In this document: positions 24,413-32,409 of the stretch, one piece after another
How the letters are laid out: each line of letters begins with the position of its first letter
Position numbering within the stretch: the stretch's first letter is position 1
NCBI RefSeq assembly: GCF_033153115.1
Contig: NW_026889796.1
Span: 4,774,001-4,838,000 of the forward strand
Direction: 5' to 3'
Length of the DNA: 64,000 nt
From: Saccostrea echinata
Taxonomy: Eukaryota
Made by a program: the position numbers and the translations under genes
The notes under the pieces: generated by a model
What the model was told of the DNA's origin: nothing
Databases searched by the model: none
The model's input: the letters and a program-made list of their open reading frames with translations, nothing else

Positions 24413-25570
24413 GTGAAATCGTCCACAACCCTGCATATATTTCGGTATAGAAAAGAATGGCACAGAATGCACATTTCGTTCTTGGCAAAGGATTTTTAAG
24501 TTCCTGATAATTACAAATTTAAACTTAAAGTCCCAGATTTCATGGAAAATATGAAGAATTAAGTACATTAAAATGTATTTTGACAACATTGATCACTCTA
24601 GCCCCCACCATATGTGGTCAAAAACATTGATTACAGAAACAAGCATGAATAAGATTGAAGCCAGGTTTCATTCGACACAAAAACATAGCCGTTAAACAAA
24701 TTTCTCCTAGAGCATTCGTCGGGGATCATTTTTAAATAGATATACGGACCACGTGATTCCTATTCTTCTTCGATATGATTTGCTATATCCATTAAAATAA
24801 GTCAGGTTGCACTTTGAGTTAATATACAAACCAGTAAGTCTTTCCGAAATGACTGCATTTAATCAATGAATCAACGAACTGCAAATACTTTTTTTTTAAA
24901 AATGTCAAAACCCTATCAAGTTTGGCAATTTTAGCTCTGTAAACGAGCCAGTGTTTGTGCATGCCAACTGAATACGTGAAAAGGCAAAAGCAAAATGACA
25001 CCTTAAATAAAGAGCATTTTAGTAACAATATCACAAAGATTCAGTAAAATGTTAATAGGTTTAATGGTTTGAGATTGAACTAGTCTAAGATTTACTCAAT
25101 TCAGCCATTGAATAGGGTCTTATTTCTTCCAGAAATAGCTCTTTTTTTGCTTATCTGCATTTTTGTTATCCTTATCTATATTGACAAATTTCATTTCTGT
25201 CCATTTCAGCAACCATACTCCTAGTAATGAGAAGAAAATGTCTGTTAATATTGATAATTCCAATGTCAATACCTATAGATGTAATATAGAGCCCCTCGCA
25301 TGTATTTGTAATTGGAACATGAACCACGGTGTCAATACTGGTTTTTCTATAAGGAAAGACTAATTTACATAACGGTATTCAGAAAACACAAACATGTTCT
25401 TCTTAGTCCCAGCTTTCTCGGATTCTTTTTGTGAATTGATTTATTGAACTTTTCAAAAAAATTGTATTTGCATGCAAATCCGATTATACTTTCATTATAT
25501 CTCTATATAATTGAATTCAATTTAAATAGATAACGATAAATTAAGCTTATTCCGCAAGAGAAACTCTATA

Positions 25571-25674
25571 ATAACTAATCATTTATGTAATGTAATATTA
25601 TTTCTATATGTTTCAGGTATCAGTCATCCTTAGTTAATTAAAGAGTTACTCATTGGATGATGGTTATCATTTAT
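25571..25674 (+). repeat. 5' LTR (103-104 bp)
   Basis: ataactaatcatttatg...ggttatcatttat, identical to the 3' LTR except 25631 T vs 31874 A. Contains ATTAAA at 25637-25642. Confidence 0.95.
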
Positions 25675-25684
25675 GACTGATACC
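25673..25684 (+). promoter_or_regulatory. Primer-binding-site position, complementary to the LTR itself (candidate self-priming PBS)
   Basis: atgactgatacc is the exact reverse complement of ggtatcagtcat (25616-25627). No TGG-initiated tRNA PBS abuts the LTR. Confidence 0.7.
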
Positions 25685-25737
25685 AGTTCTACACAATTTG
25701 ACAATTTTGGTACAAAAGACGATCTATACTCCCCAAC

Positions 25738-27250
25738 ATGCCAACGTTAGAGTGCCCTGTATTTGGATGTGAGTGGCAGTCTCAGGACCTGGATGCAGCT
25801 TTTGCCGCAGCGATGACGGCAGCACTCCAGATCCACGATAGAACTGTTCACCAGCCACAGGCCCAGCCAGCAGCTGCCGCAGCTCCCAAACTGAAGTTGG
25901 ACCCACCCACCATAGCTGCTGGATGTGACCCAGACCAGTGGTCAGCGTTCACTCGACAATGGGAGATGTACAAGGTGGGTATGGCCATTGCCCAAAACGT
26001 CATACCCACTGCTCTGTTCTACTGCTGTGACTCAGACCTTCGGACCGACGTCATGCGTGACCAACGAGGTAACATCACAGACATGCCAGAGGCAGACCTG
26101 ATGAATGTTATTAAACGGCTTGCTGTGAAGGATGAGAGCACATTGGTACAACGCATTAAGCTCAGTTAGATGACACAAGCACCTGGTACCAGCATCAGAA
26201 CGTTTTAGCCAGTCTCCGAGGTCAGGCGTCTCTCTGTCAGTACAAGGCCACATGCAAGGAGGAAGGGTGTAACCACATTTACGACTACAGTGATGAGATC
26301 ATAAAGGACAATCTGGTTAGAGGAATTGCAGACCCTGAAATTTTGTCTGACCTGCTTGGTGATCCTAAGACAGACAGAACCTTGGAAGAAACTGTTTCCT
26401 TCATAGCACAGAAGAAACAAGGCAAAGTTACACGGAGTGCAGTTGGAGATTCAGCCGGTGCGATGTCGACAACGACCCATAGCCAAAAATCAGTACAAGG
26501 ACCTGGAGGCAAGTGCTGGGCATGTGGTGGACCTGCCCACGGACAAAGAAACGATCGTCGAGTCAGACATAGAAGTTGCGAGGCCTGGACATCTACATGT
26601 GCCAAGTGTAAAGTTAAGGGTCATTATACCAAGTCATGCAGCAAGTGTTCAACGTGTGGTGCCTGGGGACATCGTGATTCATCGTCAAGGGCTTGTACAC
26701 AGGGACGAGGACAGAAACTCCGCAATCAGGGACCATCACAGGAACCGACGAAAGATGCTGACGACAAGGTTGGTTATGTCTACGACCAGCTATGTACCAC
26801 ATCAGAACAATATCAGAATACAGCACGTCTTGAACATCACATCTTCGAAGGAAAATGGATAGCTAGGCCGTCCAAACCTCATCCGATGCTACTGGTTAAT
26901 ATGACACCTTTGGCCGAGGACCATGCGTCATTTGGACATCCCATCAAAGATGTTACAAGGCTCAAAACGATACAACTGACCATGGTAGCTGACACCGGAT
27001 GCCAGAGTACGATAATCCCATTGCAGACAGCCAACAACCTGGGAATTACCAGAAAGGACCTAATTCCAGTAAAGCTCGTTATGCGAGGTGCCATCAAAGA
27101 AAACCTTGGGGTTATTGGAGCGGTTGCAGTTGATGTGAGGGTCAGAGATGGTTCCAAATCTACACGCATATTATGTTATGTATCTGATGTCATGGAAAAA
27201 GCTTTCATCTGCAGGGAGGCACTGGTTTCTCTTGGAATAATTCATGCAGA
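25738..27250 (+). pseudogene. gag: gag-protease part of the gag-pol polyprotein, disrupted
   Basis: ATG at 25738; premature TAG at 26167-26169; 1-bp frameshift near 26205 (reading resumes ASLRGQASLCQYK...DNLVRGIADPEIL); three CCHC knuckles at 26514-26696; aspartic protease ADTG at ~26988-26999; interrupted at 27251. Confidence 0.9.
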
Positions 27251-28279
27251 CGCAGCACAGTTAAGGCTACAAAAAGGGGGCGGAGCCTAATTTGTACGGG
27301 AAAAGTTAACTATGACATCATACAAAACCAACAATTCTTAAAAATACTAGAAAATGAAATGATTTGCTATTTTTAACTATATGAAACCATCAAACTACAT
27401 CTAAACTTACTATAACATGCTGTTTTGTCTTAAGCTAAATTCCACATAGCAAGGTATAAACAAGTCACTGATCGCGATGCACTTGTCGATGTGACGTCAT
27501 TTCGTAAAACCTGACGCAGTTTGTATGCAGTGAGAGGCGGATCAAGAGATTTTTTATCGCCGAAAAATGTATCCTATAATTAAATAAAATATTATTTAAA
27601 GATATTTAAGAGGCCATTAACTTGAATGCGATGTCTTCTTTATGATTTTATTTATATATATTCCGTATATTTCCTATTTAATTGATTCTACCGTATATTT
27701 GTATGCAAGTACATCGGAGGGTAATGTAAGGGTCTTAATAAATCGATCTAGTGCAAGGGCATACACTCAATGGATCACAGTAAGCTTTTACATATAAACT
27801 CTAGAAGTATTAAGGTATCTGAAAAGTGCTGCGATCCTGATGAAATCTTGAAAATGAATTAATTATATCTATATTTAATGCCGTTGACCAGCAAAAAATA
27901 CAGAATGCGGTCATATAAATATGATTTTAACAATGAAATAGCAGAATCTATAGAGGATCGCAGCACTTTTCAGAAACTTCGATATGTGTTGAAAATATTT
28001 ATACTCTAAATTTAGAATTTTAACTTGATTATGCCCTTGCACTAGTGAAATTTATAGGTGACCTCAATATTGCCAGTATATGTGTTATATCACGTGACTG
28101 CCGCATCACGTGACAAGTCTAAATATAAAATCTTATCGTCTTCAATATGTAGTTATTAACCATAATTACATTTGTCGGAAATCAATAAAGTACTGAATAG
28201 AATCGCCATCCTGATTAAGAATATCTTTTTAATCACAAAAAATGCCGATATTTCCATTGCGCACCTTAACTGTACTGCG
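27251..28279. mobile_element. 1029-bp non-autonomous TIR element (EnSpm/CMC-like) nested in gag-pol
   Basis: 16-bp TIRs cgcagcacagttaagg / ccttaactgtactgcg (1 mismatch); 2-bp GA TSD (27249-50 / 28280-81); AT-rich interior contrasting with the flanking coding DNA. Confidence 0.85.
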
Positions 28280-31200
28280 GACTTCCCAAACCATCCCGTA
28301 GACACATCAGAGAGTTTTGCTTCTGTAGAAGATGAGACTACCTGCTCCTGTCCCAGACGTCAGCCTAATCCACCTCCACTACCAACAACACTACCACCAG
28401 GCTTGGACGCTACTGAAGAAAATGTGGATGCATTAAAGGAATGGCTACTTGATTACTACAGTGCTACAACTTTTAACGTATGTGAACATCAACCTTTACC
28501 GCTGATGAACTGTGAGCCCCTAAAGCTTCACATAGATCCTGATGCCAGAGCAGTTGCTGTTCACAAGCCAGCACTGGTACCCATCCATTGGCAGGATAAA
28601 GTCTATGCTGACCTGGAGAGAGACGTAAGAATTGGAGTCTTGGAGAAAGTTAGCCAGAATACCCCTACAACATGGTGTTCCAGGATGGTAGTTACAGGTA
28701 AAGCTGATGGTACGCCCAGAAGGAAGGTAGATCTTCAACCACAAAACCGTCACTCCGTACGCCAGACCCATCATGTACCGAGTCCGTTTCATCTAGCAGA
28801 CAGGGTACCTCAAGGTATGAAGAAGACCGTTACTGACGCTTGGAATGGATACCACTCTGTACCTATTCGAGAGGAGGACCGTCACTTTACCACTTTTATC
28901 ACACCATGGGGACGGTACAGATACAAGGTAGCTCCACAGGGATTTATGGCCAGCGGAGATGCTTACAACCAACGATTTGATGCTGTCATTACGGACTTCA
29001 AGAACAAGGTCAAATGCGTGGATGACACTTGTATGTGGGCAGATTCTGTTAAAGCAGCATTCTTCCAGACGTGCGAATGGTTAGACCTCTGTGCTCGGAA
29101 TGGTATTACCCTCAACCCGAAGAAGTTCCAGTTTGCTCAAGATATTGTAGATTTTGCTGGACTCACAATTACTCCTACAAATATACGACCAAGCACAAAG
29201 TTCCTAGATGCAATCAGCAACTTTCCCACACCATCCGACATTACCGGTGCAAGAGCATGGTCTGGATTGGTCAACCAAGGTGCCTACGCGTTTGCCATGA
29301 CTAAACAGATGAAACCGTTCCGAGCTCTATTGAAACCATCTACACCGTTCCATTGGACGGATGAGCTAGATGAACTATTTACAAAGTCCAAAGAGGTCAT
29401 TATCCAGGAGATGAAGGAAGGTGTTCGTCTGTTTGACCCAGCACGCATGACCTGTCTAGCCACAGACTGGTCCATTGATGGTATTGGCTTCTTCATGATG
29501 CAGAAGTATTGCAGCTGTGCCAGTAAGACCCCAGCATGCTGTAATGACGGATGGAAGCTTTGTTTGGTCGGCAGTAGATTCACCCACCCAGCAGAAAGTA
29601 GATACGCTCCAATCGAAGGCGAAGCCTTGGCTGTTGTGTACGCACTCCACCAGACAAGATACTATGTGCTCGGATGCGAAGATCTCATTGTCGCCACTGA
29701 CCATAAACCACTACTCCAGATATTGAACGACCGATCACTCACTAAAATAGATAACAGGCGTCTCCTTAACCTGAAAGAAAAGACCCTTGGATACAAGTTT
29801 ACGGTGGTTCATGTACCTGGGAAGAAGAACCTTGATCCGGATGCAGCTTCCAGACATCCAGCTTGCCCCCCAGATCGACTGATATTACCTGGTGATGCCA
29901 CAGTAGACAAGTCCCTTGACAGTTGCTCTGCCAGTTGTCGTGATACACCCACCAGTTTCGGCCCATCTACTGAGGATCGAGATCAAGCTGATGATACCTC
30001 CACAGTTGCTGCCGCTACAACTGCATTAAATGCCAACATCATGGTTGTAACTTGGGATATGGTACGTGAAGCCACAGCATCAGATCCTACGTATATTAGC
30101 CTGCTTCAGCAGATAGAAGAAGGGTTCCCAGAGGATTATAGGGATTTGCCACTGGAGTTGCGCCCATTTCATCGTTTTTCTGGCAGTCTATGCTCTGTTG
30201 ATGGTGTGGTTCTCTTGGGACAGCGTATAGTCATTCCACCTGCCTTACGTAAACCAGTACTCAATGCACTTCATGCCGCACACCAAGGAGTCTCGTCGAT
30301 GCGTGCCAGAGCCATGGACTCGGTGTATTGGCCAGATATCACGGTGGATATTGCCAGGACGAGGGACCAGTGTGGACATTGTCACCAGATGGCTAAGTCA
30401 AACCCCATGCAGCCACCTACTGATATAGTTCCTCCTGAATATCCTTTCCAGAAGATCTGCAGCGACTACTTCACCTACAACAGTAAGGATTATGTTGTCG
30501 TTGTGGACAGGTACTCCAACTGGCCCATGGTATACAGATCGGAGTCTGGAGCGGATGGACTGGTGAAGCGCCTTCGTGAGACGTTTGTCACATTTGGTAT
30601 CCCAGAGGAATTAACATCAGATGGAGGTCCTCAGTATACAGCTGGAAAGACACAGGAATTCCTGAAAGCCTGGGGAGTCAGACATAGAATCTCATCAGTT
30701 GCAAATCCACATGCCAACTGCAGAGCTGAAGTTGCAGTGAAGATGGTAAAACGTATGCTTGCGGACAACATCACAGCCAATGGTTCCTTAGACGTGGATA
30801 AGTTTCAGAGGGCTTTACTTATATACAGGAACTCCATTGATCCAGAGACGAAGGCATCCCCAGCCTTGATCCTGTTTGGTCGTCCAATCAGAGATGCCGT
30901 ACCAATCGTAATGGGTAGATATTCGCCTCATGATACATGGAAGGAACTGATGTCGAGTAGAGAGTTAGCTCTTGCCAAACGCCACTCAAGAGAGCATGAA
31001 AGATGGAATGAGCATACCCATCAGCTACCACCACTGCAGGTTGGAGACCATGTGTATATCCAAAACTTAATGGGCAACCACCCAAGGAGATGGGAACGCA
31101 CTGGAGTTGTTGTTGAGGTCCGCCAATACCACCAGTATGTGGTACGTGTAGATGGCACAGGAAGGGTTACGCTAAGAAATCGCCAGCATCTGAGGAAATT

Positions 31201-31672
31201 CACCCCGTTTAACAGCAATTCACCCAGTGCGATTGAAACGATGCCGAGAATGCCACAGCCTTCAGAAAAGACTGTTACAGATGGTTCATCCTCGACTCAG
31301 AAAACATTGACTCTAAATCCATTGAAATGTAGCACACCACAACCTTCGCATGTGACTCCCAGGGTGGATGGCCCTTCTGTTCCACCACCTGTTAACCATG
31401 GTTCACCTGCTACATCTGGAGAGGTCTCACCTGCAGTCGTGACCCCAAAATCAACCGCTAAGTCGCGTTTATCGCCAAGACGACTATTGACGGACAAGGA
31501 CGAAGTCGCTCCTCCGACAGAACATGAAGACAAACCGAAGGTCACACGTTTACCCCGCGCTCTGGCTCGTCTTCAGCCGCACAATGCACCTGGAAAGAAA
31601 GAGTTGTTGACGCCTGGAAGACCACGCCGCAATACTAGACAGGATTCCATGGATTCTGCAGAGAATAACTGA
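28280..31672 (+). CDS. pol: pol remainder: reverse transcriptase, RNase H, integrase (open frame, but cut off from its start)
   Basis: RT DAWNGYHSV, TTFITPWGRYRY, PQG, CVDD; RNase H ATDWS, EGEALA, TDHKPL, DAASR; integrase HAAH..CGHC, SDYF, SDGGPQ, AEVAVK; Pro/Ser/Thr-rich tail; no chromodomain or env seen. Confidence 0.92.
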   Translation, partial: DFPNHPVDTSESFASVEDETTCSCPRRQPNPPPLPTTLPPGLDATEENVDALKEWLLDYYSATTFNVCEHQPLPLMNCEPLKLHIDPDARAVAVHKPALVPIHWQDKVYADLERDVRIGVLEKVSQNTPTTWCSRMVVTGKADGTPRRKVDLQPQNRHSVRQTHHVPSPFHLADRVPQGMKKTVTDAWNGYHSVPIREEDRHFTTFITPWGRYRYKVAPQGFMASGDAYNQRFDAVITDFKNKVKCVDDTCMWADSVKAAFFQTCEWLDLCARNGITLNPKKFQFAQDIVDFAGLTITPTNIRPSTKFLDAISNFPTPSDITGARAWSGLVNQGAYAFAMTKQMKPFRALLKPSTPFHWTDELDELFTKSKEVIIQEMKEGVRLFDPARMTCLATDWSIDGIGFFMMQKYCSCASKTPACCNDGWKLCLVGSRFTHPAESRYAPIEGEALAVVYALHQTRYYVLGCEDLIVATDHKPLLQILNDRSLTKIDNRRLLNLKEKTLGYKFTVVHVPGKKNLDPDAASRHPACPPDRLILPGDATVDKSLDSCSASCRDTPTSFGPSTEDRDQADDTSTVAAATTALNANIMVVTWDMVREATASDPTYISLLQQIEEGFPEDYRDLPLELRPFHRFSGSLCSVDGVVLLGQRIVIPPALRKPVLNALHAAHQGVSSMRARAMDSVYWPDITVDIARTRDQCGHCHQMAKSNPMQPPTDIVPPEYPFQKICSDYFTYNSKDYVVVVDRYSNWPMVYRSESGADGLVKRLRETFVTFGIPEELTSDGGPQYTAGKTQEFLKAWGVRHRISSVANPHANCRAEVAVKMVKRMLADNITANGSLDVDKFQRALLIYRNSIDPETKASPALILFGRPIRDAVPIVMGRYSPHDTWKELMSSRELALAKRHSREHERWNEHTHQLPPLQVGDHVYIQNLMGNHPRRWERTGVVVEVRQYHQYVVRVDGTGRVTLRNRQHLRKFTPFNSNSPSAIETMPRMPQPSEKTVTDGSSSTQKTLTLNPLKCSTPQPSHVTPRVDGPSVPPPVNHGSPATSGEVSPAVVTPKSTAKSRLSPRRLLTDKDEVAPPTEHEDKPKVTRLPRALARLQPHNAPGKKELLTPGRPRRNTRQDSMDSAENN

Positions 31673-31803: not shown

Positions 31804-31813
31804 GGGGGAGGAG
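31804..31813 (+). promoter_or_regulatory. Polypurine tract
   Basis: gggggaggag directly 5' of the 3' LTR. Confidence 0.9.
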
Positions 31814-31917
31814 ATAACTAATCATTTATGTAATGTAATATTATTTCTATATGTTTCAGGTATCAGTCATCCTAAGTTAATTAAAGAGTTACTCATTGGA
31901 TGATGGTTATCATTTAT
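31814..31917 (+). repeat. 3' LTR
   Basis: Direct repeat of 25571-25674 with one mismatch. Confidence 0.95.
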
Positions 31918-32409
31918 ATAGGTAATATGCAAAATTGTCTATGGTTGAATGATGATTAGATTGTGCAAACTTAAGTTGCTTGATTTGGAAAGTGATTTTT
32001 GCATATTCTTCACTATGTGGCTTCAAATATAGTTGATAAATGTCAAAAATGAACTTTTTAAGACAGTCAACGCTAATTCGACACTTTCATTGAGGCACAA
32101 TGCAGTACACAAGGATGTTAGTATGAAAAGATTGCATGTACATTTATAATCGAAATATCCATAAAAATATGATGAACAAGATTCTGACTAAAATGGTAAT
32201 TCTCCTTTAAATCCATTGATTACTTTCTATTGAAAGTGGAATTTACAATAAAACAGTATTTGGACTTAGCAACGACAGCCTGCAGCTTTATTATATTGAA
32301 CAGAATGCATGACTATATATCATAAAGTTTAAAACCGGTTCTGAAGAACCACGTGATATAAAGCAAGTATTCGAAAGAAAAGTCGAGAACTGGCAATTAA
32401 ATTCAGGCA

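Follow-up and report, generated by a model that had tools for sequence, protein, structure and literature searches.

How does an LTR retrotransposon begin reverse transcription when its 5' LTR is not followed by a binding site for a tRNA? The question is raised by a Gypsy element in the window, by which we mean the whole 64,000-nt stretch of the Saccostrea echinata genome analyzed here (contig NW_026889796.1, positions 4,774,001 to 4,838,000, forward strand). No TGG lies directly 3' of the 5' LTR in the window copy, and the nucleotides at the position of the primer-binding site (PBS) are complementary to a segment of the element's own LTR. To our knowledge, Tf1 and Tf2 of fission yeast are the only elements for which self-primed reverse transcription has been demonstrated. 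We propose that minus-strand DNA synthesis in the window family is probably primed in cis by the 5' end of the element's own RNA, in a Tf1-like manner. Dozens of related marine-animal families keep the same pairing with different sequences, which makes self-priming the most likely mode of the clade as a whole.

The two LTRs were apparent as a direct repeat of ~104 nt (25571–25674 and 31814–31917). Comparison with the flanks of nine other copies, each with both ends and its own target-site duplication (TSD), showed that the base before TAACT varies among the 5' copies; on the 3' side this position is occupied by the final A of the polypurine tract (PPT). Because this base belongs to the TSD on the 5' side and to the PPT on the 3' side, the LTR is 102 bp long; it starts with TAAC and ends with TTTA. 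The LTR start that the preliminary description had put at 25571 therefore moves to 25572. The LTR end at 25673 that it had considered holds, and with it an 11-nt PBS beginning exactly at the LTR edge, but the 4-bp TATA duplication from which that end had been read is replaced by one of 5 bp (TATAA/TATAG, one mismatch). TG..CA termini are absent from the LTRs of the window family and of relatives with TSD-verified ends, which have TA..TA instead. Membership in Ty3/Gypsy is not excluded by such termini, since errantiviruses are also known to have non-canonical LTR ends (PMC3601003).

Table 1 Features of the window copy, in window coordinates
Feature	Position	Strand	Basis
5' target-site duplication TATAA	25567..25571	+	5-bp TSDs in nine other copies set the LTR edges
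5' LTR, 102 bp, termini TA..TA	25572..25673	+	direct repeat with 31815-31916; TSD-based boundaries
TTCAG initiator-like motif; inferred start at A 25615	25611..25615	+	motif position across families
Putative self-primer, 5' arm, start of R	25616..25626	+	exact complement of 25674-25684; covaries with PBS
ATTAAA poly(A) signal variant in loop	25637..25642	+	sequence; same relative place in many short-loop relatives (AATAAA/ATTAAA)
Predicted U5 hairpin beside LTR end, stem ATGAT/ATCAT, loop GGTT	25655..25672	+	MFE structure; weak
Putative primer-binding site, 11 nt, from LTR edge	25674..25684	+	complementarity; TSD-defined LTR end
gag-PR-RT-RH-IN coding region	25738..31672	+	broken by stop and insertion
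Foreign insertion, ~1 kb (1024 bp), in protease region	27252..28275	.	terminal inverted repeats and duplication of element sequence
Polypurine tract GGGGGAGGAGA, adjoining 3' LTR	31804..31814	+	flank comparison
3' LTR, 102 bp, one difference from 5' LTR	31815..31916	+	direct repeat
3' target-site duplication TATAG	31917..31921	+	flank comparison

Positions 25616–25627 (ggtatcagtcat) and 25673–25684 (atgactgatacc) are perfect reverse complements over 12 bp. The 11 nt counted from the exact LTR edge (25674–25684, TGACTGATACC) are the exact reverse complement of 25616–25626, and the twelfth pair joins T 25627 to the last LTR base, A 25673. This is the inverted match that the preliminary description had reported, as were the lack of a TGG-type PBS and the ATTAAA 3' of the complementary segment. 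It had also seen that further stems can form in the enclosed loop; the predicted RNA fold has two inner hairpins enclosed by the 12-bp closing stem (−20.5 kcal/mol, z −2.4). The brevity of the repeat, in an AT-rich LTR, is all that speaks for chance complementarity. Counting 12-bp inverted repeats over the whole window yielded mostly low-complexity DNA, and a test anchored at the LTR edge was used instead. At the composition of the LTR, an exact complement of the 11-mer is expected 7e-6 times in 102 bp, and 2 of 300,000 shuffled LTRs contained one. This expectation, the recurrence of the match in 18 of 20 independent loci and the covariation of the two arms, both described below, refute chance, which we credit with practically no probability.

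The window family has ~20 copies in the 923-Mb assembly, of which 18 match at 99–100% over the LTR and leader. Its standard unit is 5315 bp long with a single 1634-aa open reading frame (ORF; L066:368-5272), and an open gag-pol frame of 1646 codons is present in ten copies. The window copy is interrupted by a stop codon at 26167–26169 and by the 1-kb insertion listed in Table 1. The latter is AT-rich, has terminal inverted repeats of 14–16 nt (CAGCACAGTTAAGG and CCTTAACTGTACTG) and duplicates 7 bp of element sequence at its ends with one mismatch; it looks like a hAT-like non-autonomous DNA transposon. The PBS is identical at 20/20 5' junctions of the family in the genome. Together with the ten open frames and the distinct TSDs, this identity points to recent transposition of the self-complementary design, and we regard the family as recently active.

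The genome also holds a 448-bp miniature derivative of the family (L020/L030, G000:C28:13674831-13675278) with a 5-bp TSD of its own, AATTT. Between its two LTRs lie the 12-nt PBS, an internal stretch of ~240 nt and the PPT, and it would be either a TRIM-like non-autonomous copy or the result of internal deletion after insertion.

Because the PBS and its complementary arm are invariant within the window family, relatives were sought. Sister family B, from the same genome and 55% identical in amino-acid sequence, appears to have the same design in other sequence. At its one 5' junction (L064), where the LTRs are 213–237 bp long and end in ...TATCTA, the PBS position TGACCACAGTC pairs with GACTGTGTTCA, 59 nt from the LTR end. 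This pairing has one mismatch, which counts against self-priming in cis. A protein search returned 1785 relatives; those listed are 56–87% identical and include sequences from Mya arenaria, Mytilus edulis and Diadema antillarum. An alignment of 14 sequences, used to scan metagenomes, added 80 loci at 37–78% identity, and 537 related loci were confirmed among the 600 pattern matches listed. The metagenome contigs are from marine samples and have eukaryotic hosts.

Of the loci, 53 have 150 nt or more upstream of gag. In 37 of these, a perfect stem of 11–18 bp enclosing a loop of 36–83 nt was the best inverted repeat, and for most of the 37 none of 100 shuffles did as well. About eight further loci, mostly decayed copies, fit this pattern too, with a single mismatch or with fewer base pairs. 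At its inner end the stem has CAT in the 5' arm and ATG in the 3' arm across 46 stem-bearing sequences, among them those of the window family and sister family B; two families have GAT/ATC in this place. For an unbiased test, LTR pairs were defined by BLAST only and the complement of the next 11 nt was then sought. The 11 nt after the LTR had an LTR-internal complement with at most one mismatch in 18 of the 20 related loci treated in this way, always 49–84 nt from the LTR end, with LTRs from 102 to 1178 bp long. The two misses are boundary artefacts, caused by Ns in one locus and by alignment overrun in the other. These BLAST-defined loci also have TA..TA termini, 5-bp TSDs and a PPT of the GGGGGGAGA type.

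Covariation was examined in 26 families, each of which differs from the others at three or more of the 9 variable positions in the arms. Watson–Crick pairing at the variable positions reached 96%, compared with 33% (maximum 50%) when partners were permuted, and three to four pair types occur at each such position. For 12 families of the subgroup with long loops, RNAalifold returned just this helix, with 14 bp, of which 11 pairs are changed on both sides; a pair counter found 99.4% of cells paired, against 19–43% in slid controls, and 0 of 500 shuffles reached the observed pairing or covariation score. The close subfamilies L081 and L095 differ by a single compensated change, from A-T to G-C. 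Uncompensated single mismatches are found in the old copies L080, L093 and L129, as expected of decay after insertion. The preliminary description had named loss of the complementarity in sister copies and families as evidence against its reading; what we found is pairing that is unchanged in the sister copies and preserved in related families by compensatory changes at nearly every variable position. These data show that the pairing of arm and PBS is under selection and is kept by compensatory change.

Selected pairing is what covariation proves, not function, and retroviral leaders contain several conserved stems near the PBS. The stem might be a structural RNA with another job, such as packaging, dimerization, translation control or 5'–3' cyclization via the 3' R, in an element that uses some other primer. 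However, the 3' arm consists of exactly the nucleotides to which a primer must bind for LTR regeneration, counted from the LTR edge in every family, and no other PBS candidate adjoins the LTR. Moreover, any primer that anneals at this PBS must have the sequence of the 5' arm. We therefore consider a stem with another function unlikely.

An alternative source of the primer is the host. Internal tRNA fragments are used by some LTR elements (PMC6317226), and a host tRNA, a tRNA fragment or another small RNA might prime here, with the match to the LTR being secondary. Against this stand at least 26 families with different PBSs, each matching only its own LTR and none beginning with TGG; because the PBSs lack TGG and differ by family, no shared tRNA explains them. 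ARAGORN found no tRNA genes in the window, and the seven dubious tRNA-like calls in 356 kb of loci from the same genome have no exact match to the primer sequence at the tested lengths of 7 nt and longer. Rfam likewise gave no match at 25400–25900. A host-derived primer is, in our judgment, very improbable.

Self-priming might also operate in trans: an RNA, or a partner packaged with it, would supply the 5' arm that primes on the PBS of another molecule. Dimeric packaging is usual for retroelement RNAs, and pairing in cis and in trans cannot be told apart from sequence data. The distance from the arm to the LTR end, however, is held at 49–84 nt while LTR length varies tenfold, and because of this constancy a hairpin constrained within one molecule is suggested. 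We accordingly rate priming in trans as quite improbable and favor priming in cis. The reading that had been put forward for the window copy, tRNA-independent self-priming, is supported by the unchanged pairing in sister copies and the compensated pairing in related families.

Besides the closing stem, the loops contain further conserved elements. A CAAAT(A/G)GG-like motif lies ~20–30 nt before the LTR end in the loops of L081, L087, L088, L096, L100, L109, L119 and family B. A GC-rich hairpin of 3–5 bp with compensatory changes (GCGC/GCGC, GTGC/GCAC and GGG/CCC) comes after it in the subgroup with long loops. The motif may be an analogue of the U5-IR or an element of the poly(A) site. A U5 hairpin beside the PBS was also considered as a clade-wide feature and was not retained; it is clear in the long-loop subgroup and weak over all families (mean z −0.44).

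The position of the 5' arm relative to the putative transcription start was compared across the clade. In 24 of 31 families a YAG/TTCAG-type motif precedes the 5' arm by 0–5 nt, compared with 20% in comparable LTR windows (p ~1e-11). Its variants are pyrimidine-rich YAG sequences (TTCAGT, TTCAGA, TTTAG), and it is similar to a TCAGT-type initiator known from LTRs (PMC3601003). In 12 families the A of the motif is itself the first base of the arm. In several others the arm begins 2–5 nt 3' of the putative start rather than at +1, which counts against self-priming in cis. In the window family, with TTCAG at 25611–25615, the arm would start at +2, and the start predicted in the preliminary description, 25615–25616, coincides with the conserved motif. 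A second candidate raised there, TCAGT at 25620–25624, would shorten the duplex if used, a point against self-priming in cis. It has no counterpart in relatives and is the less likely start, because the TTCAG-type motif stands at or just before the arm in most families.

With the start placed at the TTCAG motif, the U3 of the window family would be only 43–44 nt long, with no TATA box at the canonical distance; both features count against self-priming in cis. Should the assignment be right, a 102-bp LTR with a U3 of ~44 nt would be a compact natural case of a working LTR. A poly(A) hexamer in the loop is expected if the arm opens R, and AATAAA or ATTAAA is found 4–27 nt into the loop in about half of the families, mostly those with short loops. 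The long-loop subgroup has no canonical hexamer, a further point against the cis reading. Three oligo-dT RNA sequencing runs of the host species gave 20–30 reads each on the element, many of them at 95–99% identity, with no clusters of starts or ends; reads were likewise too sparse in one metatranscriptome, and none of the 80 metagenome loci was a poly(A)-tailed contig.

Loose read ends at L066:312-358 (window 25682–25728) point to a transcribed sister subfamily with a longer leader, in which an extra segment of at least 50 nt separates the PBS from gag, as in locus L067.

Pfam analysis of the 1634-aa protein identified an aspartic protease (weak), RVT_1, RT_RNaseH, Integrase_H2C2 and rve. The resulting pol order of protease, reverse transcriptase (RT), RNase H and integrase is that of Ty3/Gypsy, and the best PDB match of the RT is Ty3 RT (4OL8, E 4e-34). 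At E values up to 1, neither a chromodomain (PF00385) nor Retrotrans_gag (PF03732) was matched in this protein, and the gag region contains only a Cys/His zinc-knuckle-like stretch. The precomputed Pfam domains of the 120 relatives listed include no chromodomain either. At the RT active site the motif is CVDD, of which the C and the two D residues do not vary among 14 diverse relatives and the V is conserved; the missing chromodomain and the CVDD motif had both been noted in the preliminary description. The ESM Atlas returned generic RT and integrase clusters only. We classify the element as a Ty3/Gypsy-type LTR retrotransposon. Distinctive of its clade appear to be a single gag-pol ORF, a CVDD RT and LTRs that end in TA..TA; the clade appears to span bivalves, a sea urchin and many marine eukaryotes.

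Based on these features and on the precedent of Tf1, we propose a plausible mechanism, in which we infer the transcription start, the RNase H cleavage and the priming itself. First, transcription would start within TTCAG, at position 25615 or beside it. The first ~11 nt of R (25616–25626) would then fold back onto the 11 nt directly after the LTR (25674–25684), leaving between the arms a 45-nt loop that would contain the rest of R, the poly(A) signal and U5. The RNase H domain is encoded by the element, and the enzyme would cut the 5' arm after the conserved ...CA. The 3' end so created, paired with the conserved TG at the start of the PBS, would be extended through U5 and R, the terminal A of the LTR being the first base copied. 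Strand transfer to the 3' R would follow, as in Tf1. The pairing occupies the nucleotides that a minus-strand primer must cover for the LTR to be rebuilt, and the PPT adjoins the 3' LTR.

The closest parallel is Tf1/Tf2 of Schizosaccharomyces pombe. Tf1 has a single gag-pol ORF and a 5-bp TSD, both of which it shares with the window family. Tf1 and Tf2 also lack a tRNA PBS, encode an RNase H domain and have, after the LTR, an 11-nt PBS complementary to an LTR segment at the presumed mRNA start; the PBS of Tf1 pairs with the first 11 bases, and the RNase H cut falls between bases 11 and 12 (PMC7175516; PMC5341516). The differences are several. The window element has no chromodomain, no Retrotrans_gag match and a CVDD RT; its LTRs, as short as 102 bp, end in TA..TA, whereas those of Tf1/Tf2 end in TG..CA. 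Duplexes in the present clade are 11–18 bp long with a nearly invariant CAT/ATG inner end, its hosts are marine animals, and its self-priming is predicted from sequence.

Self-priming has also been predicted, from the same complementarity between LTR and PBS, for other Tf1/sushi chromoviruses, namely sushi(-ichi), Maggy, Skippy, Cft-1, Boty, Grasshopper and Afut1 (PMC6934838), and for the plant and fungal Tcn1 clade (PMC6317226). These elements are chromoviruses that bear a chromodomain, in contrast to the 120 listed relatives here; a chromodomain at the integrase C-terminus is the chromovirus hallmark (PMC3605345). Outside Tf1/sushi, self-priming is predicted for the plant Ty1/copia TAR lineage (Houba, Osr-1), which differs from the present clade in superfamily, with the copia domain order, and in its plant hosts (PMC6317226). 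Because the prediction extends to TAR, self-priming probably arose or spread more than once.

The tRNA-primed Gypsy elements of metazoans, such as Mag, errantiviruses and mollusc MolGy, share with the present clade the PR-RT-RH-IN order, the PPT, the LTR–TSD anatomy and animal hosts. They differ in having PBSs complementary to tRNA 3' ends (PMC13524379). A survey of mollusc Gypsy elements did not analyze PBSs (PMC6238403), and a 2026 metazoan survey limited its PBS search to tRNAs (PMC13524379). Our search of the literature on self-priming with Gypsy in molluscs or other marine invertebrates found nothing relevant.

A Gag of the Retrotrans_gag (PF03732) type is attributed to the Tf1/sushi group. 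The window element differs from Tf1 in chromodomain, gag, RT motif and LTR termini, and its clade may have evolved Tf1-style self-priming independently of the Tf1/sushi chromoviruses, a proposition for which we see roughly even chances. The self-priming mechanism itself is already known; new are the lineage and the variant, with evidence at the level of covariation for predicted self-priming in a widespread, active Gypsy clade of marine animals that lacks chromoviral hallmarks. Priming without a tRNA could be studied in this clade in an animal setting. LTR annotation pipelines whose search is limited to tRNA PBSs and TG..CA ends will mislabel or miss it, an example being the tRNA-only PBS search of PMC13524379.

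Self-priming would spare an element one host factor, a point of relevance to horizontal transfer. Pol of the window family is 79–87% identical to proteins including ones from Mya arenaria and 57% identical to a protein of the sea urchin Diadema antillarum, identities that suggest a wide and possibly horizontal spread of the clade. Horizontal transfer of retrotransposons is frequent among aquatic animals. If self-priming did originate independently here, freedom from host tRNAs may help to explain near-identical pol sequences, at 82–87% amino-acid identity, in distant bivalves and marine metagenomes.

Several minor observations concern the architecture of the relatives. TA..TA ends recur across the clade (for example in L078, L081, L088, L121 and L139), and R-U5 stays at 49–84 nt despite the range of LTR lengths. 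A tandem array with units of ~160–170 nt that are 84–87% alike adjoins the 5' LTR of sister family B (L064:4678-5158, G000:C1), and similar units follow the 3' LTR of a copy of the same family. Circular permutation or exactly overlapping ends are seen in many metagenome contigs of relatives (L085, L091, L115, L123, L124, L127, L131, L132, L138 and L140), and many of those 5.0–5.8 kb long have terminal overlaps of 55–127 nt. Such contigs fit either collapse of the two LTRs by the assembler or one-LTR circles.
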